Shown here piece by piece: positions 354-23,415 of a DNA stretch of 64,000 bases (its first letter is position 1; each line of letters begins with the position of its first letter). Made by a program: the position numbers and the translations under genes. The notes beneath the pieces were generated by a model. That model made no database searches, was not told where the DNA came from, and worked only from the letters and a program-made list of their open reading frames with translations. Source of the DNA: Macrostomum lignano (Eukaryota); assembly GCA_002269645.1 (NCBI GenBank), contig NIVC01000617.1:1-64000 (forward strand), in the 5' to 3' direction.

Positions 354-923
354 CGCTCGATGTAGCTGGCCAGCTCTGAGTGGCCGCTGAGCCTCGCCAG
401 GTCCAACGCCGTCCGACCCTCGCGATCCTGCAGTCCGAGCAGCCGCGACCTCTTCGAGTTTCCGTGATTCAAGCATTCATTGAATTTAAACTGCCTAAGC
501 AGGTGCAGCAGTGGCTTGGCGATTTCCAGCGTCCAGTCCGCGCCGCCTCCATCAGCGGAGTGGCGCCGTTGTCGTTTCGCAGCCACTTCGCATCGAAAGA
601 CAGCAGCGTCAGCAGACGCAGGTGGTCCTGTCGGGCTGCTAGGTTCGCAGCCGTGTCGCCGTTCGCTGTCAGCCGCCTTGGGGTTCGCGGCCAGCTTAAA
701 TAAGTACAAGATGCACTTTTCAGTGTGCACGGGAGTCTCAGGAGCGTCGGCCACCAGCATGAGGACGGTCCGACGATCTGCATCAGCGCTGGTGACCAGC
801 TGGCGCGTTGCCAGCCGCCGCACCTGGCCGAAGTCACCTCGGATGACGTCGTGGGCGAGAGTCTGGGATCGCTGGTGAGTCTCCGACGCTTGCCCGGTTG
901 CTGGGGTCCGGCTGAGTGAGTTC
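354..923 (-). pseudogene. Unit W: ankyrin-repeat exon ANK-B (frameshifted); gene continues off the left edge
   Basis: Homologous to the ANK-B exons at 10037-10608, 17775-18345 and 22630-23201 (HTEKCILYLF, NGDTAA.LAAR.DHLRLLTLLSFDAKWLRNDNGATPLMEAARTG, ELASYIER). Same CAGTTGCAG acceptor, and donor CG|GTAAGT at 353. It is 570 nt versus 572 in intact copies, with about four single-base indels (two near 860-875, +1 near 637, -1 near 524). Could be a pseudogene or sequencing error. Confidence 0.8.
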
Positions 924-1465
924 CTGCAACTGCAATTGAGGCACCCAATCTGCACATTCAAACATGTGAGTGAGTTCCTAACTGCAATTAAGCACTAAAG
1001 CTGCACATTGAAACATGTGAGTGAGAACCAAAGATATTTTTCAAATGGATTTAAAAAAAATAAATTTCAAATCAAACTGCTACAAAACTTACATTCTTAC
1101 AAAGAACCCTATGTACAATATAAGGTAAAACTTACCTTGTAATCAGAATAGTATATCACCTTAGAGGCCGCACTGCCCATTTTTAAAGACTCGAGCAGTT
1201 AATCAACTGGAAAATCAAAATGCATGAGCAGCTGCGTCAACTCAAACTCAACAGATTATATAGCGGCCTCAGAAGACATTGTCAGAGAGATGCACTGCCT
1301 GCGCCTCATTGGCTGAATGCAAACCCAGTGTCTCTGTTTCTGATTCTCTGCCGTACAGAATGCATACTACTCACGGCAGTAGAAGTTAGATTGTAGATAT
1401 TATTTTCACTTTCGCATAATACTTTTTCTGAATTTCTCTGTTGTAATACATGGCATACAATGATA

Positions 1466-2240
1466 AAACAACAACAACAAAATACGTGCTCCGCGTCACA
1501 GTGCGCGCCTCAAAGGTAGGTCTCGAATGAACGCCCCGCCGCCGACCGAATCTGGGGCGCCGCCGTCAGCCAGCAGGCAGTCGACGAATCGCCGAGTGCG
1601 GGCTTGCCCCCCCCACCGGTAGGGTGCCTGCAGCGTCAATAGCAGCACCTCCTGCATCGGTTGGGAAGTACGTTCGGCTCTGATGATGTGGAATGCAAGC
1701 TGGAGTCGCCGACGGCGCAACAGGTCGCTTGGACGAACCAGGCCGTCATGGTGGTAGAAAGCTGCGTTGGTCACTCGCTCGTTGCCGATCCTGAAGGCAG
1801 CGCTTAGCAGGTCAGCGTGCGCCGCGTCAACTTGTTGCTTGAGCAACTCCATCAGCGTCCAGGTCTCGGCGTTGTACAACAGGACGGTCTCGATCACCGC
1901 CTGGAAAAACGCCACCCTCTGGCGGTCAGGTAGGCCCTTGGATTGCAAGACTGCCCTCACAGAATAAAAGGCAGCCCATGACGTCAAGAACTAGACCGCC
2001 GAGGAAGTCGAACTGCTGACAACACGAAAGCTCCGTCGCCGGGCCATCTGCGCCTTGACTCATAAATGCAACCTCGATGTCGTCCGGCACGCAGGCACAA
2101 CGGTTTTCTGTGTATTGACCACCAGACCGACAGCTTGTACAGTTGTTTCTGGCGCCCTCGACCGTTCAGGACAGCAGGACGAGATCGTCAGCGTAGCCAA
2201 GCACGCTGAGCCGCCTCTATCGTTGACGTCACCGCAACAG
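1466..2240 (-). mobile_element. 5'-truncated, degenerate non-LTR retrotransposon (RTE-like) RT C-terminal fragment
   Basis: Minus strand encodes LSVLGYADDLVLLS (YADD at 2184-2195), GLVVNTQKT, FDFLGG and WAAF...FFQAVIETVLLYNAETWTL, which are typical RT/post-RT motifs of RTE-clade LINEs. It has stops and frameshifts and ends in a short (TTG)n tail near 1466-1480. Confidence 0.8.
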
Positions 2241-5200
2241 TTTTTTTTTAAAATAATAAACGATAAACAAGAATACGTGTCTATTGTGTTGAGAATGCAC
2301 CGTGCCTGGAGTCGCGTGACCGTGTAGAGAGGTGGGTGGATGGACAAGAGACGGGGAGGGAGAGAAGAATGGCAAGCCGAAAAGATGAGAGCGAGGGAGA
2401 AGAATTCTGATGTACCAAATCCTATAATAACTATTATACTATCTAATAGTGCAAGTTTGGTGAAAGCAGGTTTCTAGTTGTGAAATGAGAGAGTATTATA
2501 TTAAAGCCAGCCTGCAAAAGCTTATTAGAGAAACTACCTGGCATATTATTCTGCATTAACTTCATGGCCTAACTAAAAATTATTTTTATAAGCTTCGTTT
2601 TTTAATAGCGTTGCTCACAGAAAAATACGTCTTCTAAATCTGGCTTTACTCAAGTTTACACGGCTTTCAGGAATTAACAAAATATAATTTCATTCTACTG
2701 CAATATAAAATGATGGCGAAGTTTGTTTATTATCCACAGGATTTAAAAAACTACGCCATCAAGAGCAAAAAACGACTGTAAACTCAATGATTGTACGCTC
2801 GTATAGAATTGTTTGGAGATGCAATCAACCGTAGAAACATGTTAACACATGGATCTCATGTAAAAAATGCAATACCCAGTTGACATCGTTTTAAAGAGAA
2901 TTAATTTGACTATTTGAGACGATAATTACATGTACGTCGTACGCCACTCCTCTGCAGAGGACTTGAATCTGAGACTGGGATTAAAGGTGACCCTTAATTA
3001 CCTCCCGTCGCCATCTTTGGTTGTTATCATCTCGGAAGCGTCAGCGCTGGAGGTCGCGGTTCATCACCGGATGATTGCGTCACCAACACCGCGTTTCAGC
3101 AGCCACTCTTGCATCATGCGCATCTTTTATTAGTACATATATATAACTGCCTGTCTGCCTGTTTGTCTTGCTTTATTCTTTTTAAAGGGGCGCAACGTTT
3201 TAATTGCGCTACAACTTTTCAGCAGTTTCTAGAAGAGTCTGTAAGGTGCTCTAGAATCTCCTTAGCAATACTTACTAAATGTCATCTTGCATTTTTAGTA
3301 TGCATCTCTATTGCATGTCTCCAAGAGGCGGGCAGGAGGGGGCATGTCCCTCAGTAAATGCTTCGGGGGGACATTTCAATGCTTTGTCCCCCGTACCAGC
3401 TCTGTGACCTGTTATGTAAATCAAGAATTTTGTTTCAGGGCACCACGGCGCTAAAATGAGTGACTGGGGTCAAAGAAGTTGCGAAACTCGATGCTTATCT
3501 CGTTTCAGAAGACATCAAATGCAGTACAGAATTTCAGTTAGCTGTTCAGGCTCACCGCATCAGCACAAAATCTGCCAACCTGGCTTAACAATAGGCTGAG
3601 CTGCTTCTAAATCTAAAACTGTCCTTCATTCAAAACCAAAGAAATTCAGTTTGCCACTATCTATGCGCTAGTAAATATAGAAACTGAAACACGCAAATGC
3701 AGCAATGCTGTTTATTAAGACGAAGGGGCACATGGCACGCCACAGCAGCTCCAGATTAAAGATTAAATGCAGACTGAAAAATAGATGCAGAAAGACGTAC
3801 AAGTATGACCTTACGAACTCAGAAAAGAGTAAAATGCAGGGCTGAAACAGAATGCGGGCTGTGGTTGATGTGTGGGTGAGAAACTTCAAAAGAAAAGAGC
3901 GGAAAAGAGAGGGAGTGTAACTCGTATATCTAGCAATATTTTTGAAACTGAAAAACAGTTTCTGATAAATTTAGAAAACGAAAGCCAGAGCGTCTATAGA
4001 CGGTGAGTGGAATATTAAAATAGACGATTAGGCACGGACAGAGGTTTTCAAAACAAAATTAAGTTGCCAAATACTTAACATACTACTTATATATGTTATT
4101 AGTCGCAGTTCGTTGCCCTGCATCTTGATGCAGTATCCAGACTGAATATCCAGACCACAGATTATCACCCAGAACGGTCATTCACGGTGACAGCAGTGAC
4201 CGCAGTTTGTGAACAGTGATAAAGTCCTGGCTGCATAGTGCAGGCAACTGTCAGCCAATACATTCGCCAAATTCACTTATTGGTCAATTGAAATCTTCAA
4301 AATCAAAGAATATACAGGAAATCTAGCTAGGTGACATTGTTTCCAACTCTTGTGCATAATTGCTTTCGTTAGCGGTTCTAAAAAACAATTCTTCAACAGC
4401 TGTAGAATAATTGAGTCTAAAACTTTCAATAAATAAGCATGAATAAGAGTTCCGTTGAAAAATTTATATGCTAGTCTCACTTATCGTAAATACAAAGTTT
4501 GTCTGATAATGAATAATGAATTATGATAACGAAATACAACGTAAAGACGAGCTACTCACTAAGCAACATGTTACATTTTCCACCCCCGACACGTGCGACC
4601 AACTTTTCTCACATCTCAGCGGTTTTCCTCTCAACTGTGGGTGATGCAGCTTCCGTCACAAGAAGGCCCCAGTTTATTAACCTGATGAGGAGAGACAGGA
4701 GAGCTATGACCACAGAGTTGGATTAAGCTCGACCACTTTCAGTTCTCATGCAGACCTCATGAACGGGTCTCATAAGCAAAAACGTTCTGAAATTAAAAAT
4801 TTCATGTATGAGTAGATCTCATCTGAGAGTTTTTTCTCTATTTGATATCTATCTCAATTGCTTCGATCCTTTGGCCCTCTTAATACATGTATACGTATTA
4901 TACAGGCTGCCAATCGGGACCCAAAAACCATGCTACTTGTAAATTACTGTATCAAGAGCGAGAACGAGAATTTAATCACCTGTAGCACTGCCTGGAGTTG
5001 TTTCTTGGGCTCTCGGTGGTTGGGTGCTCATATATGGAAATTTCCTTTCTCTTGCTCTCTCACTCTGTCAAGCTTTTGTTTTATTGCTCATCCCAGCAGC
5101 CTATAAAACCGCGAAAAGCACCGCCTATCTGTATGCACCTGGCTCAATGCTAGCTTCTACTTATAAGAACATCGAAATTTTTGCCCTATCGTCCATTTAT

Positions 5201-6094
5201 TTCTTGCATTTTCTGCAAGCCGTTTGCATTTTGCAGCAAATTTGCGAGCCGTACTTGTCCAGCTAGTGTTTCGTTTAGCTATGAGCGTGAGCAGTCCTGC
5301 TCACGGCTCTCTTCATCAGTTTCTCGTACATTTGCACGTGTGTTAATTAACAGAATTCATCAATACACCCTCGCTTTGACCACTGACCAGATGTTCCACC
5401 TTTTCTGCGTAATCTTTCGTCTCTTATGTTTATATCTACGCATATTCCTAAACGTTCTAGTTGTCAATTGCCCATAAAGGAGTCACTAAGCAAACAACCA
5501 GTCCGATTTTGTTTGTAATTCAGTTTTTAGAGACGATAAACCTTTAACTAACTACCAATTTATTGTTCAGAAAACTTGTGATTACCAATTAACTTTAAAA
5601 ACGGTAGTCACGGTGTTAGAAACTTTAAATATAGAAACACAAAAAATAATTAAAAAATCAACCGTAACTGAGTAGCTACAAATTTTAAGCAGATTAACTT
5701 GAGTAGACATTGGAGCAGATCAACAAGTAGCTTACGCGAGCTCTTGAGCTGAAGGGGCAACCCAGCAGTCGGGAAAGCAAAAACTTGAATAAATAATAAA
5801 AAACACGTCGGATCAAAAAAACTTATAAATATATAAAAAATTGCGGCTAAATATGGATAGGCACGGCACACAAAACAGAAAGCTGCAAGTACAGGAAAAG
5901 TTCGGTTGCTTGAGTAAACTGGAGGACAGTGTTTCAGCAGCAAGAGAGATTGTTTGTCAAAAGATAAACATATCGATTACTAATTTTCAGCTAATTTGCG
6001 TGGCTACTGGGCTACGTTACTTTCAATTCTATTCTAACTCTTCTCAAAGCTACTACTTAGCACGTTGCTGAGTGAATATAATAGTGTCGACGTC

Positions 6095-9000
6095 TCAGAA
6101 ACCGCTAAAAAATTTCATTGAGCAGCTTAAACTTTCGAGCTTCTCTGGATCGAAGCTTACAAGGCGTGAAAGCTGGTCGACTTTCTGTGGCACAACATGG
6201 TACAGGTTGTTTTTCACCCGAACCGGGTTTTCCTGCAAGTGGCCGCTCACCTTGGTCATGATGGTACTGAGGTCGAGCTCACGGAAGTTTTCTCGATGAA
6301 ATCGCAAACAGTCTGCACGTACAGCGAACCCGTGTCGATGTTTCTAAAGGCGGCTGAGCCTGGAGTGTTGGCGTAGCAGAGCAGAAAGTCGCTCTCTGCA
6401 GGACGGACCGCGGTGTTGTACACCGGAGCGGGTGCTCGTCCGTTTCCTCGCGAGAATTGGGAGCAACAACAGCGCGGTCGAGACGGCTTCCGCGACAGGC
6501 CTGGATGAAGAACGCCTTCGGCCTGCCTTCAAGTCTGCGGCAGACAGAGCTCTGCGATGCGATGACAGTGGCGGTGAGGTTTTTCGTCTTAGAAACATGG
6601 TATACTGTCTAGTCTCCGCTTCTTTGATGAATTAGATTGAAGGCGTGAGACACGCCTGTTTCAGAACTCAATTCAGAACTCAAAATGAGATTTCGGCTCT
6701 CTCATGCGCTTGTATATTTTTCCGCTAGCGTTCGCTGGCTTCAAGCCCATACCTGTAAAGCGCAAATCCCCCAACATGTCTATGAAAATATTTTACGTTA
6801 ATAAAATGCACTACATGTTTTGTCATCAGTGCCACAAAGTCTACACAGACTTTTGTAAATGCGAAAACGAGTTCCTACACTCAATATTACCTTTCGGCTC
6901 AATACTATACATTTCTATTCAGAGCCCTTTTTAATATTCCTGTCCTTGCTCATATCAAGATAAAAAACTATCAACAGGATATTCTCGGCGATAGCTTACC
7001 TGGAACCTGTCTGTCAGCTTTCGAATTTCGTAGGGACAGCCGTCCCTACCGTAGATGCAGTCGTGGCTGCCGTGCGCCATCAGGAAGCAGACAAAGCTGC
7101 CATGCTCGCAAGGTCCGGTGACTTTTTTATCTCATGGAGGAAATCATCCACCTGCTCAGCGGTAAGATCCTATTTTACCTTGACGATGAAGCGCAGACTC
7201 TCGAATACCTGTTTCACTCGTTCAACATCACGAACTGAACCTTTACGCTCGGTATGACTGAATGTGATGTCACTTCCGGAGTCGTACTTGCTGATGTTGA
7301 TGATCAGGCAGTAGCCTTGCGGGTCCGTCACTGGATAGAAGTCTCCCTCCACCCTGGAATACAGTGAATGCTCAATACATTTTTTACGAGCTCGTACTTT
7401 ACAGCGCAAAACATAAAATTTAGTATCACCTTGACAGCTGATGGCGAGCGGTTTGACACGCATGGCTCCTCCGAAGTCTCCAAAAGTTCTTTTAAGTGAA
7501 AAACAACAATTTGACTATGCTGTTACTGAATATTTGTGGCATGCTTTGCCTGATGACTAAATAAAACTTCGACTCACAGATCTGGTTCCTCATCGCTTGG
7601 TATCTCGTCATCAGCATGGTCTGTAAAAACTTTTCGTCTGAAAAGGTAAAAAAGCCATGCAGTTTTCGTAGCTGTGTGCTGTAGCTGTGTGTTGTAGCTG
7701 TGTGCTGTAGCTGTGTGCTGTAGCTGTGTGCTGTAGCTGTGTGCTGTAGCTGTGTGCTGTAGCTGTGTGCTGTAGCTGTGTGCTGTAGCTGTGTGTGCTG
7801 TAGCTGTGTGTGCTGTAGCTGTGTGCTGTAGCTGTGTGCTGTAGCTGTGTGCTGTAGCTGTGTGCTGTAGCTGTGTGTGCTGTAGCTGTGTGCTGTAGCT
7901 GTGTGTGCTGTAGCTGTGTGCTGTAGCTGTGTGTGCTGTAGCTGTGTGCTGTAGCTGTGTGTGCTGTAGCTGTGTGTGCTGTAGATGTGTGCTGTAGCTG
8001 TGTGCTGTAGCTGTGTGCTGTAGCTGTGTGTGCTGTAGCTGTGTGCTGTAGCTGTGTGTGCTGTAGCTGTGTGTGCTGTAGCTGTGTGCTGTAGCTGTGT
8101 GTGCTGTAGCTGTGTGTGGTGTAGCTGTGTGTGCTGTAGATGTGTGCTGTAGCTGTGTGCTGTAGCTGTGTGCTGTAGCTGTGTGTGCTGTAGCTGTGTG
8201 CTGTAGCTGTGTGTGCTGTAGCTGTGTGCTGTAGCTGTGTGCTGTAGCAGTGTGCTGTAGCTGTGTGTGCTGTAGCTGTGTGTGCTGTAGCTGTGTGCTG
8301 TAGCTGTGTGCTGTAGCTGTGTGTGCTGTAGCAGTGTGCTGTAGCTGTGTGCTGTAGCAGTGTGCTGTAGCTGTGTGCTGTAGCTGTGTGTGCTGTAACT
8401 GTGTGTGCTGTAGCTGTGTGCTGTAGCTGTGTGCTGTAGCTGTGTGTGCTGTAGCTGTGTGCTGTAGCAGTGTGCTGTAGCTGTGTGCTGTAGCAGTGTG
8501 CTGTAGCTGTGTGTTGTAGCTGTGTGCTGTAGCAGTGTGCTGTAGCAGTGTGCTGTAGAAGTGTGTGCTTAGTGTGCAGTGTCTGCGCTTGAGCTGAAGA
8601 AACTCACCGTGGCTCCGAAGACTCGTCAAAGTACTTCTTGCCTTCGTACCTGAAATTGATTTGGATAGTTTGAATCAAGACTTTGGCTGATATTTTGTTT
8701 TCACGTGAGTATTTAGGAACTCAACAGCAGATTTCTGATTTCAAGATGGGATTCAGGGTCTCGAAACAAACTCATTTTTTACATAGATTTTATATTAAGC
8801 CGTAAATTTTGAATTTTATCTTTAAATTGAAGATTTTGCTTAGATTTATCAGCAATAAAGTTATAAAGTTATCAACTGGCAATCTGCAGTCAAACTGCAC
8901 TGCAAACTTCCTCAATGCAGCTCAGTCAGTCCCTGCTGCCCATTTGGACTACAATAATTAAAAAATTCCCACTCAGAGCAACTGCCGTCAGCTGCTCAAT

Positions 9001-10608
9001 ATTCAATCATAAATTACAGCAATAGTGTTTATCAATCGGGATAAATCAAAGTCAAAGAGAAATTCTCAGTCGCCATGGAAACTCACCCACGCAGCAGCTC
9101 AGCCAGTTCGCTCTTTCCCTTCTCTGTGGCCAAATCCAGCGCAGTCTCGCCGTTTATGTCCTTCAGGCTCCAATCCGCCCCTGAGTCCAGCAGAACCCGA
9201 CCGACTGCGGCGGCGGTGGCGGGGGGCGCATGGATGGCTGCCTGCATGAGAGGCGTAGATTCCATTCCACTCGTGGCATTTGCGGAGACTCCGACAGCCA
9301 GCAGAGCGGAGGCTGCGGCAGAATTTCCAGCGCTGGCTGCGTGGTGGAGGCAACTTTTATCATAAAAATCTGCCAATGTAGGGTCTCCCATATGCACCAG
9401 CTGCTCCCACAGAATCTCATCACAGCAGGACCTGTTTTGAGCTGCCCACATCAACGCGGTGCAACCATATTGGTCAGGCAGGTCGCAGCTGCTGCGGGTC
9501 GCCGCTCGCCGCAGCGCCGCCATTAAGCCCTTATCGGCCAGCCGCCGCAGTTCCTGTCGATCCGACTTCTCCTGCAAAGGCGAGTGGGAAATTTGAGCAC
9601 AGCTGCTCAGTTGCAGCTGCATCGCCACTGCAGATGCCACTCACCTTGGCTATCAGGCCGGAGATAAAGCTATGTCTATCCACAACCAGCCGCATCTCCC
9701 TGAAACAGCAGAATTGAGCAGCGAATTTGCAATTTTCTCAAATCTGGCAACTCACATAGCTATATTATAATAAAATTTTATGATAATTTTCATGATATTT
9801 GTCAACAGAAATTCTAAATAATGTGAGCTGCTCGCGAATGGACTTTCCAAGAGCCCTCAAGCACAGCCTCCCAGTTCTCCATCTGCAGCTCAACCCACAC
9901 ACTCTCACTGCACACCGAGGCCCTACAGCTTCCATTCTTGACTGAGATCAACCCGCATCCCGTTGGCTGGAAGGCAGCTCTCGCCCATCAAGCAGTCAGC
10001 CAGAGACAAGCTCAGCTCAGCGAACTGCTCACTCACCGCTCGATGTAGCTGGTCAGCTCTAAGTGGCCGTTGCGCCTCGCCAGGTCCGACGCCGAGTGTA
10101 AATTGCGATCGCACAGTTTGAGTAGCTCCGACCTCTTCGAGTCTTCGTAGATAGTGGACTCATTGAACCTTCTCTGCCTGAGCAGGTGCAGCAGGTGCTT
10201 GGCGCATTTCCAGCTTCCAGTTCGCGCCGCCTCCATCAGCGGAGTGGCGCCGTTGTCGTTCCGCAGCCACTTCGCATCGAACGATAGCAGCGTCAGCAGC
10301 CGCAGGTGGTCCCGCCGGGCTGCCAGGTGCGCAGCCGTGTCGCCGTTCGCGTCAGCCGCCTTGAGGTTAACGCCCTTCTCAAATAAGTACAAGATGCACT
10401 TTTCAGTGTGCACGGGAGTCTCAGGAGCGTCGGCCACCAGCATGAGGACGGTCCGACGATCTGCATCAGCGCTGGTGACCAGCTGGCGCGTTGCCAGCCG
10501 CCGCACCTTGCCGAAGTCACCTCGGCTGACGAGCTGGGCGAGAGTGTGGAGATCGGCTGGTGAGTCTCCGACGCTTGTACGGTTGCTGGGGTCCGGCTGA
10601 GTGAGTTC
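6095..10608 (-). pseudogene. Unit Z: ANK-B + ANK-A + caspase (peptidase C14A); caspase part disrupted
   Basis: GT-AG exons with compatible phases: 10037-10608 (ANK-B), 9645-9699, 9087-9571 (ANK-A), 8608-8649, 7578-7637, 7000-~7488 (p20: GYCLIIN, FLMAHG) and 6095-6551 (KPKAFFIQACRG, p10 SDFLLCYANTPG). There is an in-frame TAG at ~7150 and -1 indels near 7088, 6435 and 6290 relative to unit X. Confidence 0.85.
7666..8560. repeat. 13/15-bp GCTGTAGCTGTGT(GT) tandem repeat in the intron between micro-exon and linker exon of unit Z
   Basis: Directly visible tandem array. The homologous intron in unit X carries a shorter array (21015-21253). Confidence 0.95.
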
Positions 10609-11385
10609 CTGCAACTGCAATGGAGGCACCTGGCTTTTAGAACCAGAAAAAGGGTATAGAACTCCGGGGTATTGTCGTTTTTTATCCTGTTGAATGAGGT
10701 TAAGGATTACACGTCGAAATGGTCGAGGTAGATTCCATGGAAGAGAAATACGTGTCCATTATGAGCGCTACTGTCGCGACTTATAATAAGGATACGGTCT
10801 AAAGCTACAGACCTACAGTTTATAGTTCTTGTTTTACTGCAAATGTACCAACAGCTAATAGTAATTTATTAGCTCACCGTGTTATTCAGAGAGGAGGCCG
10901 CACTGCCCATTATTCGCACTTCAACCAGTTTTTCTCCACTCAGGCCGGAAAGCAAAATGCATGAGCAGTCGACCCTAGGCAACAGATTATATATCGCCCT
11001 CAGAAGACATTGTCAAAGAGATGCCTGATTGGCCTAATGCAAAGCCGGTGCCTCGGTTTAGGGTTTATCTGTCATACAGAATGCATACTACTTACGGCAG
11101 TAGACACCCTCTAGGCAAATGAAGATCATCGTTGCAAAATTATTTTTTATTTCGTACAAATCAACAAATTTTCTGGCTTCTTCCACTAAAATTGCATGAT
11201 TTTTTTTGGTAAATGCAAGACTTACCTTCTAAAAATAAGCACAATGTTTGTAATTAGTGACAGACACACAGAGACTAAGAGCTGAAATAATGGAAATGAG
11301 GAGAGATATGCCTCTAAGGTTTTGTCGTTACGAGTATATACATGCCATTGCTTGAAATGGCGCAAAATGAGTTATTGCATTGCCA

Positions 11386-12140: not shown

Positions 12141-12509
12141 GTGCAACAACCCCAGGATTTCCAAAAATATGGGTAACTTTTTGGTTTGGAACTGGTGGCT
12201 TTGCACCCCTTACGCCATAAAGTCCAAGGCAACTCCCCTTCTGCAGCTATATTGTTGGTATAGAAATTTTTTTCAAAAATGCAGGACCCATTAGAAGTAA
12301 TTTTTCTGACTCTGTTTCAGCCGTGTTACCCATAGGCTGTTTTTATTAAAAATCATCAATAACAGTATTCGCATGCATTGCTTCATTACAAAAGACATTT
12401 TGAAAGAGGAGAGGATGCGGAATATGATTTTCATATTCTAGTCTAATCTTTCTTCTGCTTAAGAATTTCTTGGCTATCATAGTACTCGAAATAATCAATA
12501 ATGATTTAT

Positions 12510-12801
12510 TAAACATGCCCTAATGGCCAGATGTGCAACCGACAGCTCAGCCGCAGCTATTGCGCGGCGCATCTGAAGGTTGCGTACGGCTGTTCAATCC
12601 AAGGACTGGGGGGGGGGGGTCGCCACACATACCCTCAATTACCCCAGCTAATGCTCGCACCCATTTTACAGCTGGGTGAACTGAAGCAATGCAGAGTTAG
12701 GTGTCTTGCTCAATGACACAAATTGTTCCGAGTGGGATCAGGAATCGAACCCCCGACCTTCAGCCGTGAGTCCGACGCTGTAACCACTAGGCTACAACCC
12801 C
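12510..12801 (-). mobile_element. tRNA-derived SINE with V/Meta-like core
   Basis: Minus strand begins GGGGTTGTAGCCTAGTGGTTA (A box) and has GGTTCGATTCC (B box). These are followed by GTGTCATTGAGCAAGACACCTAAC...CACCCAGCTGTAAAATGG, resembling the conserved core of V/Meta-type SINEs. A second copy lies at 13870-14010. Confidence 0.7.
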
Positions 12802-13869
12802 ACTCTTCAAATACACCAAACCGTTTAACTTCCACCTTTGCATAGCTCTGTGCCTGCTTGGAAATATTTCAAACAGGAAAAGGGGTCAGTTTATCCCCTA
12901 GACAAAGAATTCTGGAGCAATGCTGAGCTCTGCTCTTTCAAACAAGATCGGTGCTTTTTCGTTTTGGAAGACATCAAATGCAGTACAGAATTTCAGCTAT
13001 TCAGGCTGACCGCATCTGCACAAACTCTGCCACTTTGCTTAACAAAAATGCTGCATGAGCTGCTCTAAAACTGAGCCGTCTTTCAGAACAGAAAAAATAT
13101 TTTTGCCACTAAATATAGAAACTGAAACACGCAGTGCAGAATGCTGCTTATAGAGGGGCATGGCAGCTGCGCACACTGCAGCAGCTCCAGATTCGAGTTT
13201 AAAGACAGACAATTGCATGCAGAAGAGAGTTAAATGAAGGGGCTGAAACACACGGGGGAGGTGCAGTGGAGGTGTAGAAGATAAAATTCGAATAGGAAAG
13301 AGTGGAGAAGAGGAGGAAGACTGAATGGCCTTGTTTTTGAAATGGAAAAATAATTCACTGATAAATTTAGAAACCGAAACACAGAGCGTCTGTAGGGGTG
13401 AGTTGAGGGTGAAAATAGACGATTGGTACAGACGGCTGTAATAAATATATAAAATTGTCAAATCTTTACTTCACCTTCACCTTTAATTTACTTCAAATCC
13501 AGATAGAATGTCCAGATAAAATAGCCAGATAGAAGACTCTAAAATGAGGGCGCCAAAATGAGTGACTGAGGCGCAAAAACTAAATATTGACAAGCTCAAT
13601 TTACAAAAATATGGGTAATTTTTTGCTTCGAACTGTTGGATTTGCATCGCCTCCGCCAAAAAATTCATGGCAACTTCCCTGCCGATGTTTTACGAGCGTA
13701 CTGTTGGTATGAAGATTCTTATCAAAGATGACTTATTAAAGTCATCACTTCTTCATTGCAGAAGACATTTTGAAAGAGGAGAGGATTCGGATTATGATTT
13801 TCATACTCTAGTCTAATATTCCTTCTGCTCAAGAAATTTTAGGCTGTCATAGTAAATCAATAATAGTTG

Positions 13870-14010
13870 ATTACATTTTACAGCTGGGTGAACTGAAGCA
13901 ATGCAGAGTTGAGTATCTTGCTCAAGGAAACAAATTGTTCCAGTGAGATTGGGACTCAAACCCTCGACCTTAAAGTCGTGAGTGTGACGCTCTAACAACT
14001 AGGCTAAAAC
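13870..14010 (-). mobile_element. Second, more diverged copy of the tRNA-derived SINE
   Basis: Aligns by eye with 12660-12795 (TTTACAGCTGGGTGAACTGAAGCAATGCAGAGTT...CTAGGCTA) inside a duplicated intergenic block. Confidence 0.65.
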
Positions 14011-16814
14011 CTCATTAAATACACCAAACCGTTTAACTTTCACCTTTGCATAGCTCCGTGCCAGTTTGGAAACATTTCAAACAGGAAAAGGGGTCAGTTT
14101 ATCCCCTAGAGAAAGAATTCTGGAGCAATGCTGAGCTCTGTTCTTTCAATCAAATGCAGTACAGAATTTCAGCTATTCAGGCTGACCGCATCTGCACAAA
14201 CTCTGCCACTTTGCTTAACAAAATATGCTGCATGAGCTGCTTTAAAACTTCAGAACAGAAAATATATATTTGTCTGAATGGCCTTGTTTTCGAAATTGAA
14301 AAATAATTCTGTGATAAATCTAGAAACCGAAACACAGAGCGTCTGTAGGGGTGAGTTGCAGGTTGAGGTTTGAGGTTGCGGTGGAGGTGGGGGGAGAGAA
14401 AACTCCAGATAGAATGAGTCGAAAAGACGAGGGAGGCTGAATGGCCTTGTTTTCGAAACTGAAAAATAATTCACTGATAAATTTAGAAACCGAAACACAG
14501 AGCGTCTGTAGGGGTGAGTTGGGGGTGAAAATGGACGATTGGGCATAAACAGAAGGCATTAAAATTATTTAAATTCCCAAGTATTTACCACACTACTTAT
14601 AGTATTAGTCGCAGTTCATTATTGATCAAATTTTGTAATTTTGTTTAACCTCTGACTTGAAAAACATTACCCTGCATCTTGATAGATTATACCGATACGA
14701 GCTAGAATATCCAGATAGATTATCTAATAGAAAACACAATCGGCTAAGGACTTCGTCACTCTGTCCAAATTCGGTTGTAGCCATAGACATGGATAGTGCT
14801 CGGCCTTCTTAAGCCCTCGATCGGTGGTAGTCCGTCAGGCCTAGGAGCAAAGAAATCAATCACTTATTGAATACTCTGGCCTCTCAATTCTATCAGATGG
14901 TCTGCCCTCGGGCAGCTGAGATGTGGGCAAGCAGAACAGCACAGACCCTGTGGCTAAGAGAAGACAGCAAGAGACAACCAGCAGGGAGACTTTTAAAGGT
15001 AGAGATTAGCTAATCCGGAGATTTGGCTAACCCATGCCGCCACCAAACTGGCTCTAGAACTAATTTGCAAACTACAGCTGTTATAAGTGACACTGCTGGA
15101 CTGGATCGCTGTCCAATCTAAAGATTTAAGGGTCGCTAGCAAGTCTCTCTACACCGCTCAGTGTACTATTACATTATTGACTTCCCGTGAAAGTACATCT
15201 ACATGCATTTTGACGCTTCTCCACGACTCTAAGAACGCATAGCGCTGAATGGGGTTTTGCAATAGACAATTTTGACTGAAGAAAATCCGACTCGTGCGTT
15301 CTTAGATGACCTATCCCTCGACACATCCATCAGATGCCATCACCCACATAGTCTGCCCGAGATAGACCTCTTACACCAGTGGAGCTTCCTACTTCTGACT
15401 ACGCTGGAGCACTCAGAGAGAGCAGCGCATCCAGTTAATGCAGACAAAATTCGTACTCATTTCTAACTGAGTAGTTTCATTCTCCTCTCCGTATCCAACG
15501 CACTCATGGTTCGAGCCCTTTTGGAAATATCTCAAACAGGAGAATTCTATAGGCTTGCCAACATGAGAATTTGTGTCCTAAAACTATTTTACATGGCCCA
15601 GAGCAATGCCCATCTATTTTGGAAAGCGCTGTAGATTAAAACACAATGGATGAGCCAGTGCTTTTTCAAGGCCGAAAGAGCCTGTATATGCAATGCACAG
15701 TCTTCTCTGCAAAGCTCTGCCCTCACTTTTGTTCAACAATGGCATTAGAAATAGGCGAACTGAGCAAATGCTGGGGCAGCTGCATGGCTGAGTAATGAAT
15801 TCAGGGTGCTCAAAACTCCACTCAGTTGTACGGGTGGCCAATTCGTATGGGCCCGGCTCAAGTGCGGGGCTTCTTGTGGTCATTGCCAATCTGTCTTTAG
15901 TCTCAGCAGGGTCTGTTGCAAAGCGTTTTTCTACCTGCATGTGGAATCTGTGCCACCCACCTGCTTAATACTCGCGACTGATGCAGGTGTAACTAAATAA
16001 AAAACTTGACAAATATGCATTTAGCATACTTTAAGTATCGATTCTCAATCCTTCAACTTTCTACGAGAAAACTGACATTTAATTAAAACCGTTTGTGTTT
16101 TGGTGCTGAGCTTATAGTAGGGATAAAGGGCGGGGCAGGCTTTTAAAAAAACAGATTATGAGAACAGGGGCCCGTGCTATACAGCACTCTTAACTGCTTA
16201 ACAAGCTTGCATGAAGTCGAAAAATCGTGGAAGAGACTGAAGTACAAGGACGGACCGTCTGCAGAGTACGTAGCTCCGGTATGTGCTGCGACCCCACTGC
16301 GTTCCCAAGGCTTCAAAAATAAAGATATGACAACGCGGGCACCGCAATCTCGGGCATTGAGTCTCTGAGGTGCGCAAAAAATATAAGCTAAATCTCTTCA
16401 TCAGCTTGAGCAGTCTCACAAAAGTGTACAGAGAAGATTGAGTGCTGGCTTGCATATATTATATATATAAAATACAAAAATCTGTTCCGAAATTTCAAGG
16501 ATATGAAACAAAATAACTCAAAGCATAGAGAAAACACACAGAATTTCAGAAAAAGAGAAAAGGACAGTATAGTATAAGGAACCACCTCACAACGACATTT
16601 TAAATCACAGGAGCAGTGTGTGAATCAGCAGCGTGTGAACAGCAGTGAGCCAACAGCAGTGTATGAACAGTAGTGAGTGAACAGCAGTGTGTGAACAACA
16701 GTCACATATGCGCAAGTATCTACCTATATCAAACAAGCTGTCAATATCAAAGATGATACTGTGCCATCATCATTGTGCCATTATGTCCCATCGCTGCCAC
16801 CTGAAGAAACTCAC

Positions 16815-18345
16815 AGCGGCCACAGAGACTCGTCGAAGAACTTCTTGTCTTTGTATCTGAAAAAAGAAGTCCAAGGTCTAAATTCAGGTGATTTTTCGGT
16901 ATAAATAGGCCATTGTGGCTTGGTTACTTAAAACCATTGCTTGCTACTTCATTCGCCTGTTTCATTCCTGTGAAAAGCCCCAGGAAGCCTGTCAACTATC
17001 TGAGAGTGGCTGCAGTCAAATTGCCATTGAGGCATTCTCAGTCGCCATGGAAACTCACCCACGCAGCAGCTCAGCCAGTTCGCTGTTTTCCTCCTCCGTG
17101 ACCAAATCCAGCGCAGTCCTGCCGTGTCCGTCCTTCAGGCTCCAATCCGCCCCAGAGTCCAGCAGAACCCGACCGACTGCGGCAACGGTGACGGGAGGCG
17201 TAGCGAAGGCTGCCGCCATGAGGGGCGTCAACTCACAGTAATCCCTGGCATTGGCGGAGGCTCCGGCAGCCAGCAGAGCGGAGGCTGCGGCAGAATCGCC
17301 AGTCCTGGCTGCATAATGCAGGCAGCTGTCAGCCAGTACATTCGCACAGGTGGGGTCACCCAGCTGCACAAGCTGTTCCCGAGCCTCATTACGACACGAG
17401 CTTTTCCCAGCTGCCCACATCATCGCGGTGGCACAAAATGCGTTAAGCAGGTCACAGTTTCCGTTTGCCACAGCTCGCCGCAGCCCCGCCGAGTCGCTTG
17501 AATCGGCCAGCCGCTGCAGTTTCTGTTGCTTCCTATTCTCCTGCAAAGGTGAGAGGGAAATTTGAGCACTGCTGCTCAGCTGCAGCCGCATCGGCGCTAT
17601 AAATGCCGCTCACCTGGGCGGTTAAGCCGGATAAAGATGCATGTTTTTTCACCACCAGCCGCATCTCCCTGAAGCAGAAAAATTGGGCTTCTTGAATCTG
17701 ACAACTACGTCGTACAATTACCAAATTATAATGCTGCAAAACTTGATGGACACAGCAGCAAACTGCTCACTCACCGCTCGATGTAGCTGGCTAACTCTAA
17801 GTGGCCGCTGAGCCTCGCCAGGTCCGACGCCTTCCGACCCTCGCGATTTTTCAGTCCGAGCAGCCGCGACCTCTTCGAGTTTCCGTGCTGTCTGCACTTA
17901 TTGAACATTGCTTGCCTGAGCAGGTGCAGCAGGTGCTTGGCGCATTTCCAGCTTCCAGTCCACGCCGCCTCCATCAGCGGAGTGGCGCCGTTGTCGTTCC
18001 GCAGCCCCTTCGCATCGAACGACAGCAGCGTCAGCAGCCGCAGGTGGTCCCGACGGGCAGCCAAGTGCGCAGCCGTGTCGCCGTTCGCGTCAGCCGCCTT
18101 GGGGTTCGCGCCCAGCTCAAATAAGTACAAGATGCACTTTCAGTGTGCACGGGAGTCTCAGGAGCGTCGGCCACCAGCATGAGGACGGTCCGACGAGCTG
18201 CATCAGCTCTGGTGACCACCTGGCGCGTTGCCAGCCGCCGGACCTTGCCGAAGTCACCTCGGCTGACGAGCTGGGCGAGAGTGTGGAGATCGGCTGGTGA
18301 GTCTCCGACGCTTGTCCGGTGTCTGGGGTCTGGCTGAGTGAGTTC
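16815..18345 (-). CDS. Unit Y: ankyrin-only paralog (ANK-B + spacer + ANK-A + micro-exon), no caspase exons found
   Basis: Exons 17775-18345 (ANK-B, one T missing in a T-run at ~18138), 17614-17668, 17059-17540 (ANK-A) and 16815-16856, all with GT-AG sites in the same phases as unit Z. No linker, p20 or QACRG exon is recognisable between 16814 and 10609. Confidence 0.75.
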
Positions 18346-19594
18346 CTGCAACTGCAATTGGAGTACCCAAGCTGCACATTCAAAGACGTGAGTGAGAACT
18401 CAGTTTAGTAATGGACCGCTTGAACCCACACAAAATCAATATTTTACACTAAATACGTCCATGACGCTTGATAGGTTTGCATTTTAGTTTGTATTCAGTA
18501 AGTGCATTGTTCAGTGATTCCATTGTCCTGCATTTGAATCATGGAAGTCTGTGTTGTCAGGCAGTCAGACACAGCTCGTGTTTCGTTACTTTCGGCTCAC
18601 ACGGCTCTCTTCGCCAGTTACATGTGCTCACTCATTAATCAACACAATTCATTAAAACACCCTCTTTAACCCATTGACCAGATGATCCACCTTTATGTGT
18701 AATTTTTTACTTCGTGTCTTGTTTATATCTCAGGCATATTCCTGAACGTCCGATCGCGTACCTGTGGCTGTAGTTGCCAAGAAGAGTCACCAAGCAACAA
18801 CCATTTAGTTTTTAATTGGGATACAACGTCTTTTAGCAGCGATAAAGCCTAACAAATTTTTTACTAGTTTTGCTTTAGAAAGCTTTCGATCACCGATTGA
18901 ACTTTATAAACAAGCAATAAGATGGTTAGAAACGTAATTAAAACAATAAAGATTACCAAAACAAACGTTAACGGTAATTGAGTAATTCAGTTCACATCAA
19001 CTTGAGTAGCTAGATATCAGTGCCAATTAACAGTAGCCTACAGTACGCTTGAGCTGAAAGGGCAACACAGCTGTCGGAGAAGCAAAAACTGGGTATAAAA
19101 AAACTTGAATAAAAATCTCAGAAAAGCACATGCATGTTTGATTAGTTGAAAATCTTATAAAAATAAGAAATTACCGGCTGAATTAATTGAAACCATCAGA
19201 GCGGTCTAATCTAAATAAGGCTACGAAACACAAAAACAAATGGCTGCAAGTACAGAAAAAGTTTGGATAAACTGGAACAGTATTTCAGCAACAAAATGAT
19301 TGTTTGTCAAAGGCTAAACATCTCGATTAAAAATTATTAGTTATAATTTGCCTGCCTACTCGGCAGCAGAGCAAAACAGGCTCCGTCACCAATTGTATAT
19401 GTCCCTATTTCTCCTCTGAACTGTGGGAGATGCAGTTTGCGTCACATTGCTCCAACTTTGGCTCGTGAAGAGAGAATGTCAGTTATGGCTGAAGTTGGAT
19501 TAAAGCTGCTAGTCTCAGTTCTCAGGAAACTTTAACATGTTGCTGAATGTACTTCTATACAAGTGTCGCAGAAACCTCTAAGTAATTGTTCCAT

Positions 19595-22500
19595 CTAAAC
19601 TTTTTCAGCTCTTTCTGGATCAAAGCTAACTTTGCGCGAAAGCTGGTCGACTTTCTGCGGAACAACATGGTGCAGTTTGTTTTTCACCCGCACAGGGTTC
19701 CTCTGCAGGTGACCGCTCACCTCAGTCATGATTTCACTAAGGTCAAGCTCACGGAAGTTCTTCTCGATGAAATCGCAAACAGTCTGCACGTACACCGAAC
19801 CTTTTTCGATGTTTCTAAAGGCGGCTGAGCCTGGAGTGTTGGCGTAGCAGACCAAAAAGTCGCTCTCTGCAGGAAGGACTTCGTCGTTTAACACCGGAGC
19901 GGGTGCCTCGTCAGTTTCCTCGCCAGAATTGGGAGCATCAGTTCGGTCGCGACGGCTTCCGCGACAGGCCTGGACGAAGAACACCTTCGGCTTTCCTTGA
20001 AGGCTGCGGCAGACAGAGGTCTGTGATGCGATGGTAGTGGCGGTGAGGTCTTCAGCCTTTGAACCTAATTATACTGACCAGTGGCGACCACAGAATGATC
20101 CTAACTGGATTCAGGATTTTAGCTCGTATAAGATGTTTTTAGGATCTGTGGTCTGGACTGTTGTAAATGCCAAAAACATGTTCATTTCAGTCAAGATTAC
20201 CTTTTGTTTCTATTCATAAATTTCTCTTTAGGACCATTTTAATAGCCCTACGAGCTATTCTTGCATAAATCAAGATAACAAAATAATAAACATGGTATTT
20301 CTTGCGAGGCTTACCAGGAACCTGTCTGTCAGCTTTCGAATTTCGCAGGGCACGCCGTCCCTGCCGTAGATGCAGTCGTGGGTGCCGTGCGCCATCAAGA
20401 AGCAGACAAAGCTTCCGTGCTTGGCAAAGTCCGGTGACTTCTTTATCTCACAGAGGAAATTATCCACCTGCTCAGCAGTGAGGTCTTCTCGTATCTTGAC
20501 GATGAAGCGCAGACTCTCGAATACCTTTTGTACTCGTTCAACATCAAGAACCGAACCTTGACGCTCTGTGTGCTCAAATGTGATGTGACTTCCGGTGTCA
20601 TACTTGCTGATGTTAATGATCAGGCAGTAGCCTTGTGGGTCCGTCACTGGATAGAAATTTCCCTTGAGCCTGGAATGCAGCAGATGCTCAATAGCTCGTA
20701 TACATGTACTTTTTATTGTAGCAAGGCCAAACAACACAATGTAGTGGCACCTTGAGGGTTGATGTCGGACTGGTCTGTCACGCACAGGTTTTGTAGGATT
20801 TCTAAAAGATTTTTATACTGACATAGGAATAAATTCAATATTAGGATGATATAATCAATAAATATTTGTAAGCAGTTCCCCACGACCACGAGAAAAATAT
20901 CTTTAACTTTGACTCACCGATCTGGTTCATCATCGCTTGGTTCATTGTCAAGGGCATGGTCCGTGAAAACGTTTCGTCTGAAATGGTCAAAAAGGGTAAG
21001 AAGTTCTCTCAGCCTTGTGCTGTAGCTGTGAGCTGTAGCTGTGTGTGCTGTAGCTGTGTGTACTGTAGCTGTGAGTTCTAGCTGTGTGTACTGTAGTTGT
21101 GAGCTGTAGCTGTGTGTACTGTAGTTGTGTATGGTGTAGCTGTGTGTGCTGTAGATGTCTGCTGTAGCTGTGTGTGATGTAGCTGTGTGTGCTGTAGCTG
21201 TGTGTGCTGTAGCTGTGTGTGATGTAGCTGTGTGTGCTGTAGCTGTGTGTGCTGAAGGAACTCACGCCAGTGCCAGAGGCTTGTCGAAGTAAATCTTGCC
21301 GTCGTACCTAAATAGGCAGTTCGGAGTCTGAAGTCAAGGTAATTTATGTGAGCCCATGCTCTTTGCTTCGTTCTATCTGTTAATCGATTTTTATTATTTT
21401 AGTATCGTGCGATAACCGTAAATGAGTAAGTTGTAAACTTGTAAACTATTTATTTAACATTACAAAAGACCACAAAAAGCTACCCTTGATACGATCGTAA
21501 GTCTATACACTGGCCAAATATTTTTTTATAATTAGCCTAATTTTTCTTATGTTTCAGGCGGTCATGCATAGCTTTCGTCGATGGAAAATTCGAATGGGAA
21601 GTGAGTCGAATATCGAAAAAAAATATGCTTTCTTAATGCTGTCAAAAGACACTCGGTAGTCATTTTCATTGCGAACGATTCTGACTTGAATTGGAAAATG
21701 AGTTAAATGAAATTTATGATGTCAGTAGGAACGGACCTTAATGCCCAGGGTTTTGGTGTAGAGTTTTGAGTTATTTGACCGTTTAACTTTGCACACCGCT
21801 CCCCCCACTTCATTCCTGAACTCAAGTCTGAACTCACAAAGATTGATAGACTTTACCTGCACTCTCAAAAGTGACGAACATAGACGAATCTTCTGTGATG
21901 GCGACTATTCGATTTTGCAGAGCATATGTTACTTACTTGTCTTTAAGTTCTTTTGATTACCGAATTATTTACAGGGTAGGGCAAAGAGCGTTTAATGATG
22001 CCTTACTTAATAGCTTACTGGTGATTCAACTGGCAATCTGCAGTCAAAATGCACTGCAAACTCCCTCAATGCAGCTCAGTCTAATTAAAATTAATTAAAT
22101 TAAAATTTATTGTTTACCATAGAAGTTTTATGGTAAATTTTAGAAAATATAAACTGGCAATTAGGCGGTTAAGGCCCCTTCGGGGGGACCTGTACCTCCT
22201 TGTATGCCCCAGAGTATTTGTGAGACATTTGTGAAAAAGCATTCCCCAGATAGCAAGTTTATCCCAAAAACAAGCATCCGGATCCCCGATATAAATCCAA
22301 CAAAGTTTTGAAGCTAAAAATGGAATAAGGAATTTAAATAAACTACATGTAGCTTCTGAGCTTTAAGTCTTGACATCTCAGCAATTCCCCCATGAGCCTT
22401 GGCATCACAGCAATTCCCCGTGAGCCCTGACATCTCAGCAATTCCATTATGAGCCTTGACATCTCAGCAATTCCATTATGAGCCTTGACATCTCATCAAT

Positions 22501-23415
22501 TCCCCCGAAGGTTCGCTTTTAAATGCGTCACACAGACACTCACTGTTGGTATATATTGGATTCCAAATTATCTGAGCTGCTCGCAGATGGACTTTCCAAA
22601 AGAACTGCAGCAGCGAACTGCTCACTCACCGCTCGATGTAGCTGGCCAGCTCTGAGTGGCCGCTGAGCCTCGCCAGGTCCGACGCCGTCCGACCCTCGCG
22701 ATTTTTCAGTCCGAGCAGCCGCGACCTCTTCGAGTTTCCGTGCTGTCTGCACTCATTGAACATTGCCTGCCTGAGCAGGTGCAGCAGGTGCTTGGCGCAT
22801 TTCCAGCTTCCAGTCCGCGCCGCCTCCATCAGCGGAGTGGCGCCGTTGTCGTTCCGCAGCCACTTCGCATCGAACGACAGCAGCGTCAGCAGCCGCAGGT
22901 GGTCCCGCCGGGCTGCCAGGTGCGCAGCCGTGTCGCCGTTCGCGTCAGCCGCCTTGGAGTTCGCGCCCAGCTCAAATAAGTACAAGATGCACTTTTCAGT
23001 GTGCACTGGAGTCTTAGGAGCGTCGGCCACCAGCATGAGGATGGTTCGACGAGCTGCATCAGCGCTGGTGACCAGCTGGCGCGTTGCCAGCCGCCGCACC
23101 TGTCCGAAGTCACCTCGGATGGCGTCGTGGGCGAGAGTCTGGAGATCGGCTGGTGAGTCTCCGACGCTTGTCCGGTGTCTGGGGTCCGGCTGAGTGAGTC
23201 CCTGCAACTGCAATTGAGACACCTGGGAGTTACATCTAAGTACTGAAATTTTTTGAGTCAACTTGCACAAGCAACCGGAGTCGCCGACTGTAGATAATTA
23301 CTACTACATGTATTCAGTTTCTGTCGCTTCAACTTACCGCAGAGTTAGGGAAGTCGGTAATAATTATTTCTTCATCTTCTGACGATGAATTCGAATCGTC
23401 TGAGGAGCTTGACAT
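19595..23415 (-). CDS. Unit X: intact ankyrin-repeat caspase (ANK-B prodomain + caspase p20/p10), ~554 aa
   Basis: Exons 23338-23415 (MSSSSDD...), 22630-23201, 21266-21307, 20918-20977, 20315-20801 and 19595-20020 join in frame (1665 nt) with canonical GT-AG sites. Caspase motifs: YPVTDPQGYCLIIN, ERQGSVLD, FLMAHG, CRSLQGKPKVFFVQACRG, LPAESDFLVCYANTPG, FRNIEKGSVYVQ. Confidence 0.92.
21015..21253. repeat. GCTGTAGCTGTGTGT-type tandem repeat in unit X intron
   Basis: Directly visible. Homologous position to 7666-8560. Confidence 0.9.
22368..22505. repeat. ~29-bp tandem repeat (TGACATCTCAGCAATTCCATTATGAGCCT), about 5 copies
   Basis: Directly visible, in the unit X intron at the inferred ANK-A deletion junction. 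Confidence 0.85.

Follow-up and report, generated by a model that had tools for sequence, protein, structure and literature searches.

Described Ankyrin-Repeat Caspases and the Macrostomum lignano Cluster

Caspases with ankyrin-repeat (ANK) prodomains were described in platyhelminths in 2024 (Genome Biol Evol evae204; PMC11463336), in a study that credits Lee et al. 2014 for Schistosoma. In that study, the ANK caspases are sister to caspases with death-effector domains (DEDs), are restricted to parasitic platyhelminths, and are linked to the loss of DED caspases. For Macrostomum lignano, the study reports only a caspase with a kinase prodomain, placed sister to the ANK group. FADD is reported there as lost in all platyhelminths, so recruitment of the type seen in the death-inducing signaling complex (DISC) is unavailable to these animals. 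Here, a 64,000-nucleotide (nt) stretch of M. lignano DNA (contig NIVC01000617.1, positions 1 to 64,000; hereafter the window) was found to carry four head-to-tail minus-strand paralogs, named W, Z, Y, and X in order of position, that share one set of ankyrin and caspase exons. An initial annotation of the window had proposed a candidate undescribed system and knew of no canonical caspase class with an ankyrin prodomain. That claim does not survive the account in PMC11463336 or the presence of M. lignano family proteins in UniProt and NCBI that already bear Ank and Peptidase_C14 annotation. The architecture itself was therefore already known; what is new is the occurrence of ANK caspases in a free-living flatworm, their strong expansion, their arrangement in tandem arrays, and a cassette held in common with STE-type kinases. 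We consider it probable, though well short of certain, that the region is a tandem cluster from an M. lignano-specific radiation of caspase-8-like, long-prodomain caspases, in which ankyrin cassettes (ANK-B with or without ANK-A) replace the death-fold prodomain and serve in activation as proposed below.

Layout of the Cluster

Self-BLASTN of the window resolved four copies of the ANK-B exon that are 88-95% identical (335-945, 10018-10630, 17753-18363, and 22608-23223) and two copies of ANK-A that are 79% identical (9062-9719 and 17034-17688). The caspase p20 (6848-7913 and 20156-21257) and p10 (6057-6613 and 19532-20082) regions are also present twice, with 77-82% identity between copies, and the duplication extends over parts of the 5′ and 3′ flanks. 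Pfam called Ank_2 and Peptidase_C14 on the open reading frames (ORFs) of the cluster. When all six frames were scanned with a family profile hidden Markov model (HMM), caspase sequence was confined to X and Z; tblastn and the HMM found no caspase remnant downstream of Y or W and no further family copies at 23.5-64 kb of the window. The head-to-tail, minus-strand array of four paralogs built from one exon set is thus borne out by self-BLASTN and Pfam. The full set comprises ANK-B, a spacer, ANK-A, a micro-exon, an acidic linker, a small extra exon, p20, and p10; the exons named in the initial annotation were right, and the one it missed was the small exon of 51 or 60 nt found in X and Z. Every internal module is phase-2 symmetric, with ANK-B ending and p20 starting in phase 2, so modules can be dropped or swapped in frame and copies with differing module sets keep their reading frame.

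Gene X Encodes a Predicted Intact Zymogen

Exon 1 of X (23338..23415; this and all other exons described are on the minus strand) starts at an ATG and encodes MSSSSDDSNSSSEDEEIIITDFPNSA; it ends at a GTAAGT donor and is identical to the N terminus of the protein model P0002. X starts with an acidic, Ser-rich tail, as does the paralog P0001. The 578-nt ANK-B exon (22630..23207), bounded by splice sites, encodes approximately four to five ankyrin repeats (Pfam Ank_2, E=1.5e-16) and ends in phase 2. It is followed by a micro-exon encoding YDGKIYFDKPLAL (21266..21307; phase 2 to 2, GT-AG, 100% match to P0002) and an acidic linker exon encoding RNVFTDHALDNEPSDDEPD (20918..20977; phase 2 to 2, from the sequence and splice sites). 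An optional 51-nt exon, NPTKPVRDRPVRHQPS (20751..20801; phase 2 to 2), is predicted from its splice sites and from homologous exons that are used in transcript-based models of Z (P0007, "ARHQLSR") and P0001 ("IVRHQPPR"). The p20 exon (20315..20669; Pfam Peptidase_C14, E=9.9e-19) contains the catalytic His in LMAHG, and the last exon (19595..20020; Pfam, E=1.1e-15) carries QACRG (19958-19972), the intersubunit linker, and p10 through to the stop codon. Splicing of six exons, with GT-AG at all junctions, gives an ORF of 1539 nt (512 amino acids); inclusion of the seventh, 51-nt exon keeps the frame and gives 1590 nt (529 amino acids).

Judged from its spliced sequence, X encodes an intact zymogen composed of ANK-B, an acidic disordered linker, and a caspase with a complete catalytic site. 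Family alignment A1 shows no variation at the catalytic His and Cys or at the Arg, Gln, and Arg of the S1 pocket (R35, H93, Q134, C136, and R186). In the AlphaFold model of X, residues 45-222 form an ankyrin solenoid and residues 257-510 a caspase fold, both modeled with confidence. Within ANK-B, the predicted local distance difference test (pLDDT) score is mostly 84-96 over residues 50-220, with a low-confidence loop at 178-183, and the two linkers are modeled as disordered (pLDDT <50 at residues 223-256 and 392-423). Foldseek returned caspase-8, caspase-3, and caspase-7 as the best PDB matches, with template modeling (TM) scores of about 0.85. By sequence, among PDB entries, caspase-3 (1.6e-36) and caspase-8 (3.9e-34 over the full length) are about equally close. 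The modeled p20/p10 fold and the predicted catalytic and S1 residues place X among the caspases (MEROPS C14A). Its prodomain of ~255 residues and its Asp-containing motifs, DEPD in the prodomain linker and EETD|E in the intersubunit linker, would match those of initiator caspases activated by induced proximity.

The Ankyrin and Caspase Exons Are Probably Joined

Joined ANK and caspase exons are present in the Mlig_3_7 models P0001, P0007, P0003, P0019, and P0031. The annotation that produced them was assembled from RNA-seq with StringTie, TACO, TBONE, and TransDecoder, and its transcripts are cut at experimental trans-splice sites (PMC5730564). P0007 (BOX15_Mlig007583g1) matches the exons of Z at 100%, and because it is an RNA-seq-based model, Z is transcribed. 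The exons of the P0001 gene are arranged as in Z; the gene is a fifth paralog, with ANK-B, ANK-A, and caspase, and lies ~30 kb to the left of the window on the same Mlig_3_7 contig (L001 10001-15978). A Sema-domain gene follows it.

M. lignano performs spliced-leader (SL) trans-splicing, and ~7% of its assembled transcripts are multi-gene precursors (PMC5730564). The fusion could in principle be an annotation artefact, with neighboring ANK and caspase genes residing in a polycistronic, trans-spliced unit and yielding separate proteins; consistent with this, databases hold caspase-only (P0004 and P0005) and ANK-only (P0012) models. This explanation is very improbable. The exons are phase compatible, and in X a stop-free ORF passes from ANK-B via three or four short exons into p20 with no Met between ANK-B and LMAHG, so the X caspase would be untranslatable without its upstream exons. 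P0004 and P0005 begin with a translated intron minisatellite (see below) and are therefore truncated predictions. TBONE left P0001, P0003, and P0031 fused despite the cuts at experimental trans-splice sites, and the ANK-caspase architecture recurs in Schistosoma, Taenia, and Cichlidogyrus. The ankyrin-repeat prodomain and p20/p10 of X would accordingly be predicted to reside on one polypeptide, and the equivalent joins in its paralogs are backed by transcript-based models.

Copies Z, Y, and W, and the Origin of Their Lesions

Z carries every module, from an MGxxxS first exon through to caspase p10. Exon 1 (MGSAASSLNNT; 10878..10910; donor GTGAGC) is an exact match to P0007, and the ANK-B exon (10037..10614; Pfam Ank_2, E=4.1e-18) is 100% identical to P0007 residues 12-204. 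The spacer (9645..9699), the micro-exon encoding YEGKKYFDESSEP (8608..8649), and the acidic linker exon encoding RKVFTDHADDEIPSDEEPD (7578..7637) were assigned by P0007 matches and splice sites, and the ANK-A exon (9087..9571; Pfam Ank_2, E=1.6e-22) gives a spliced translation equal to P0007. The small extra exon, TFGDFGGARRVETARHQLS (7430..7488), was identified from the P0007 sequence and has 59 nt in the window versus 60 nt in the Mlig_3_7 contig. Contig comparison located an in-frame TAG (7170-7172) and a 1-nt gap (7106) in the p20 exon (7000..7353), and frameshifts at 6435 and 6289 in the window copy of the QACRG/p10 exon (6128..6551). The catalytic motifs of Z are present, with the TAG upstream of them. 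Several family members (Z exon 1, P0019, and P0003) have an MGSxxS start; the resemblance of the Z MGxxxS start to an N-myristoylation signal suggests possible membrane tethering.

Y consists of a 577-nt ANK-B exon (17775..18351, from the alignment of the four copies), a spacer encoding EMRLVVKKHASLSGLTAQ (17614..17668), an ANK-A exon (17059..17540; Pfam Ank_2, E=1.1e-12), and a micro-exon encoding YKDKKFFDESLWPL (16815..16856), with the spacer and micro-exon read from the sequence. Its ANK-B exon has one lesion only, a 1-nt deletion in an A-run at 18138-18140. No linker or caspase exon follows the micro-exon, and the HMM scan detected no trace of a caspase from 10.9 to 16.8 kb. This confirms the earlier reading of Y as ANK-B plus ANK-A lacking a caspase, with the micro-exon as an addition, and Y resembles members of the family that are annotated as ANK-only. 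W comprises an ANK-B exon (354..929) with three indels in the window, as seen in the four-copy alignment and the contig comparison; on the Mlig_3_7 contig, the 3.1 kb past the left edge of the window hold no other exon of the family after W.

Positions 1-15855 of the window were compared with the end of contig NIVC01003438.1 (GCA_002269645.1, Mlig_3_7), which ends between Z and Y. The two sequences are 99.44% identical, with 21 mismatches and 68 gap bases (89 differences listed), and most of the gap bases are bases absent from the window; the window was accordingly taken as a different, less polished assembly of this locus. At each of the W ANK-B frameshifts (870/866, 667, and 521) and Z caspase frameshifts (7106, 6435, and 6289), NIVC01003438.1 contains the base that restores the frame. 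There, the ANK-B exon of W is one clean ORF, the p10 exon of Z is intact with QACRG, and the p20 exon of Z is intact except for one TAG ("FIVKVK*DLTAEQ"). The TAG at 7170-7172 is the sole lesion of Z common to both sequences, and it implies that the annotated Z product is an ANK-only protein. Mlig_3_7 was polished by Pilon with Illumina and RNA-seq reads, and its base accuracy reportedly exceeds that of the earlier PacBio assembly (PMC5730564). On this sequence comparison, the W and Z-caspase frameshifts are assembly indel errors, and such errors make up most of the apparent pseudogenization in the window; the Y A-run deletion is of the same type and is probably also an assembly error. Reading-frame breaks elsewhere in the window deserve the same suspicion.

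The comparison rules out a reading of the copies as four different decay states. The initial annotation was correct that X, Y, Z, and W differ in their module sets and that Z has all modules; W has the ANK-B exon only. The "broken" and "partial" states it assigned are largely products of assembly indels: the frameshifts of both Z and W are absent from Mlig_3_7, and the break in the Z caspase that stands is the TAG.

Relatives and Phylogeny of the Family

A search with the X protein returned almost only M. lignano proteins, which included all close matches, with Ank plus Peptidase_C14 in at least 14 clusters; bird caspase-8 appeared at ~1e-30. By sequence, caspase-8 and caspase-10 are the closest relatives outside flatworms. 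A caspase-domain profile search over 1.84 billion representatives gave 10921 matches, and architectures were determined for the best 150 from Pfam and source names, with ANK assigned by phmmer using real prodomains in addition to Pfam. Among these 150, M. lignano has ANK-caspases (Mlig019067 and Mlig001045), an ANK-kinase-caspase (Mlig018903), a kinase-ANK-caspase (Mlig030125), and a Roc-caspase (Mlig000293), and the monogenean Cichlidogyrus has an ANK-caspase. ANK-caspases from schistosomes, Trichobilharzia, and Taenia were added by a search with P0191 (BOX15_Mlig019067g1-g4), an M. lignano ANK-caspase located outside the window; a homologue search with the Cichlidogyrus protein gave no useful matches. 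The architecture therefore occurs in M. lignano, Schistosoma, Taenia, and Cichlidogyrus. A jellyfish prediction (P0122; Sanderia malayensis, EukProt) has ANK repeats and two caspase domains, which may reflect a separate fusion of ANK with caspase or a merging of gene models.

In a neighbor-joining tree of 50 caspase domains (236 alignment columns; 500 bootstrap replicates), the ANK caspases of Neodermata group together with 100% support, and M. lignano P0191/P0248 is their sister (81% bootstrap). X, Z, P0001, and P0005 group into a subfamily with 100% support within a radiation that contains only M. lignano sequences (48-52% support) and also includes the ANK-kinase-, kinase-ANK-, and Roc-caspases. 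The window family is thus placed apart from the neodermatan clade, and the tree gives no support to the possibility, also considered, that its genes are orthologs of the neodermatan ANK caspases.

The cassette extends beyond caspases. In many M. lignano genes (P0014-P0017, P0020, and others), ANK-B/ANK-A is joined to an STE-type Ser/Thr kinase, with 80-91% identity in ANK-B. In one such kinase paralog, P0017, ANK-B is 91% identical to that of X and the kinase most resembles ASK1, PAK, and MST. Elsewhere in the genome the ANK cassette is joined to STE-type kinases or to nothing, and related caspases have ANK plus kinase, kinase plus ANK, or Ras/Roc prodomains (P0129, P0137, P0143, and P0110). 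In P0001 the catalytic pentapeptide is QAGRG instead of QACRG, a change of the catalytic Cys to Gly that is also found in P0034. These data support the original view that the family is modular and evolves by birth and death, with ankyrin cassettes in place of the death-fold prodomain of a caspase-8-like caspase.

Comparison with Known Systems

The closest described proteins are the ANK caspases of parasitic flatworms, such as the Schistosoma mansoni "subfamily C14A unassigned peptidase" and the Taenia solium "Caspase-8". Like the window genes, they come from flatworms, lack a death-fold domain, and have an N-terminal ankyrin prodomain before a caspase-8-like p20/p10. The differences are that the neodermatan clade is sister to Mlig019067 (P0191), whereas the window genes belong to the separate M. 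lignano-only radiation; that the window genes have a two-cassette prodomain (ANK-B/ANK-A) in common with kinase genes; and that M. lignano is free-living. The "protein-kinase pro-domain caspase" of M. lignano mentioned in evae204 is probably a member of the Mlig018903 or Mlig030125 family (P0129, P0137, and P0143). These kinase-prodomain caspases belong to the same caspase radiation, and the N-terminal ANK region of P0129 is homologous to the P0003 cassette (E=3.7e-50); they differ in that a Pkinase domain precedes the ANK repeats and the caspase or lies between them, whereas the window genes have no kinase.

Among better-known caspases, caspase-8 and -10 share with the window family a long prodomain, an (E/V/L)xxD motif in the intersubunit linker, and closeness in sequence, but their prodomain consists of tandem DEDs rather than ankyrin repeats. 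Y, TAG-truncated Z, and the QAGRG proteins P0001 and P0034 resemble cFLIP and the CARD-only and DED-only decoys in that the recruitment module is kept and the protease is lost. This is only a resemblance, and the cFLIP-like copies in the cluster may simply be decaying. As regards NLR/STAND-like sensors, Pfam found no NACHT, NB-ARC, or other oligomerization NTPase in the window genes, and the additions seen in their relatives are Pkinase or Ras/Roc.

From its position in the tree, Mlig019067 is likely the ortholog of the parasite ANK-caspase clade in a free-living, early-branching flatworm. Its placement as sister to the parasite clade contradicts the published restriction of ANK caspases to parasitic flatworms. 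The larger radiation within M. lignano itself, with ANK, kinase, and Roc prodomains in tandem arrays, would also alter the published picture. Together, the free-living ortholog and the radiation would mean that ANK caspases arose in the rhabditophoran ancestor or earlier, and would untie their origin from parasitism. M. lignano, for which transgenesis and RNA interference (RNAi) are available, would be a workable system for the study of caspase activation without a death fold, which is harder in schistosomes.

Selection, Activation, and Competing Explanations

Selection was estimated by the Nei-Gojobori method in pairwise comparisons. For the caspase p20 and p10 exons of X, Z, and P0001, the ratio of nonsynonymous to synonymous substitution rates (dN/dS) is 0.27-0.42 (dS 0.22-0.41), and for ANK-A it is 0.76-0.99 (dS 0.28-0.42). 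The whole ANK-B exon has a dN/dS of 0.53-1.76 and a dS of 0.07-0.13; the low dS indicates that the ANK-B exon either arose more recently than the caspase exons in these genes or has been homogenized. Expressed as the ratio of nonsynonymous to synonymous differences (pN/pS), the ANK-B core (codons 31-140) is at 0.46, the N-tail at 2.75, and the C-terminal part at 1.0 averaged across pairs. For the C-terminal part in the X-Z pair, pN is 0.27 versus a pS of 0.077 (Fisher p=0.035, uncorrected). The ANK-B core hardly varies among the 31 paralogs compared, and most of the variability falls in a single loop (exon residues 148-157). The caspase exons and the ANK-B core are under purifying selection and ANK-A is near neutral, a pattern that for ANK-A could be either relaxed or diversifying.

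These patterns suggest how the zymogens may be activated. By analogy with other initiator caspases, the conserved ANK-B core would dock the zymogen, either by contact with a common partner or by self-association, and proximity-induced dimerization with autoprocessing at the linker Asp sites would activate the protease. DED and CARD play this activating role for caspase-8 and caspase-9. ANK-A, the N-tail, and the one ANK-B loop may provide paralog-specific contacts, and the ANK-only copies (Y and truncated Z) and the Cys-to-Gly P0001 could be cFLIP-like, dominant-negative regulators or decaying copies.

A competing explanation, in line with the initial annotation, views the ANK cassette family as a lineage-specific innate-immune or conflict sensor repertoire, in which variable ANK surfaces trigger a caspase or kinase effector. 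The lineage-specific expansion, the tandem arrays, and the shuffling of modules among caspase, kinase, Roc, and no effector fit such a role, as do the ANK-A dN/dS near 1 against a constrained caspase, the elevated pN/pS of the ANK-B N-tail, the uncorrected X-Z result for the C-terminal part, and the single hypervariable loop. Recognition of a variable ligand is nevertheless partly contradicted: in the 31 paralogs the ANK-B core, including its canonical binding face, is near invariant and only ANK-A, the N-tail, and the one loop vary, which argues against a hypervariable sensor and for a common partner over a variable ligand. In addition, Pfam detected only Ank and Peptidase_C14 in the window genes, with no NACHT, TIR, or death-fold signaling domain; the literature search on gene identifiers found no report of infection or expression; and a variable surface on a conserved framework is expected of any ANK family under relaxed constraint. 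A sensor role for the window genes is at best weakly favored by the sequence patterns, and the repertoire as a whole is an unlikely explanation. A broader version, more doubtful still, would make the Macrostomum ANK-B/ANK-A cassettes a death-fold-independent sensor-effector repertoire. In that scenario, conserved ANK-B docking and fast-evolving ANK-A and loops would be shuffled in phase 2 to a caspase, an STE-type kinase, a kinase plus caspase, or, as decoys, to no effector, giving FADD-lacking flatworms an immune and cell-death system that resembles the inflammasome or the DISC but arose separately.

Several observations weigh against the preferred interpretation of the cluster as a radiation of ankyrin-activated, caspase-8-like proteases. 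The activation mechanism would rest on likeness to DED and CARD caspases. The nodes of the neighbor-joining tree that join the neodermatan clade to the window-family radiation have <5% support. A database search found no transcript-based Mlig_3_7 model that matches X, Y, or W, and the X junctions are inferred, with backing from P0002, a gene prediction on a near-identical copy. A literature search on the Mlig gene identifiers found no paper and no report of expression, localization, or activity. Finally, an ANK dN/dS near 1, the Z nonsense codon, and the loss of the catalytic Cys in P0001 would also fit a cluster that is largely decaying.

This last point leads to an alternative in which the window copies are mostly nonfunctional relics, a graveyard of recent duplicates in which X is possibly silent, with functional members only elsewhere in the genome. 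The TAG of Z is common to the window and NIVC01003438.1, the neighboring P0001 has QAGRG, ANK-A evolves near neutrality, and X, Y, and W have no matching transcript-based protein; the relic explanation could also draw on the missing caspase remnants after Y and W and on retroelement fragments within the cluster. However, the seven exons of X are clean, with canonical splicing signals and an ORF free of interruptions, Z is transcribed, and every frameshift that could be checked, in W and Z, proved to be an assembly error. The dN/dS of the caspase exons in X, Z, and P0001 implies that selection was active until recently. Such a graveyard is accordingly judged improbable, if slightly less so than the sensor repertoire, and a radiation of ankyrin-prodomain caspases remains the preferred interpretation.

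Repeats and Surrounding Window

The Z intron between the micro-exon and the linker contains a 13-nt minisatellite, GTAGCTGTGTGCT, of ~65 copies (7668..8565; self-BLASTN), with a homologous array in the same intron of X (21016-21254); it is this repeat that is translated at the N-termini of P0004 and P0005. The interval between Z and Y contains a further array, of 37 copies of a 21-nt unit (11363-12139). Upstream of W, a fragment resembling a long interspersed nuclear element (1496-1987, minus strand) was identified by eye and has no Pfam match. To the right of the cluster, the window contains a gypsy-like retroelement with RVT_1 and rve domains (32533-38196, plus strand), a run of N marking an assembly gap at about 39.7-40.2 kb, and a mariner-like transposase with Transposase_1 and HTH_48 domains (61916-62632, plus strand). 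The housekeeping neighbors are ANAPC2 (41761-45202, minus strand), with Cullin and TPR_ANAPC2 domains, and TMEM208/SND2 (48799-49413, minus strand), both of which are broken up by long tandem-repeat introns.

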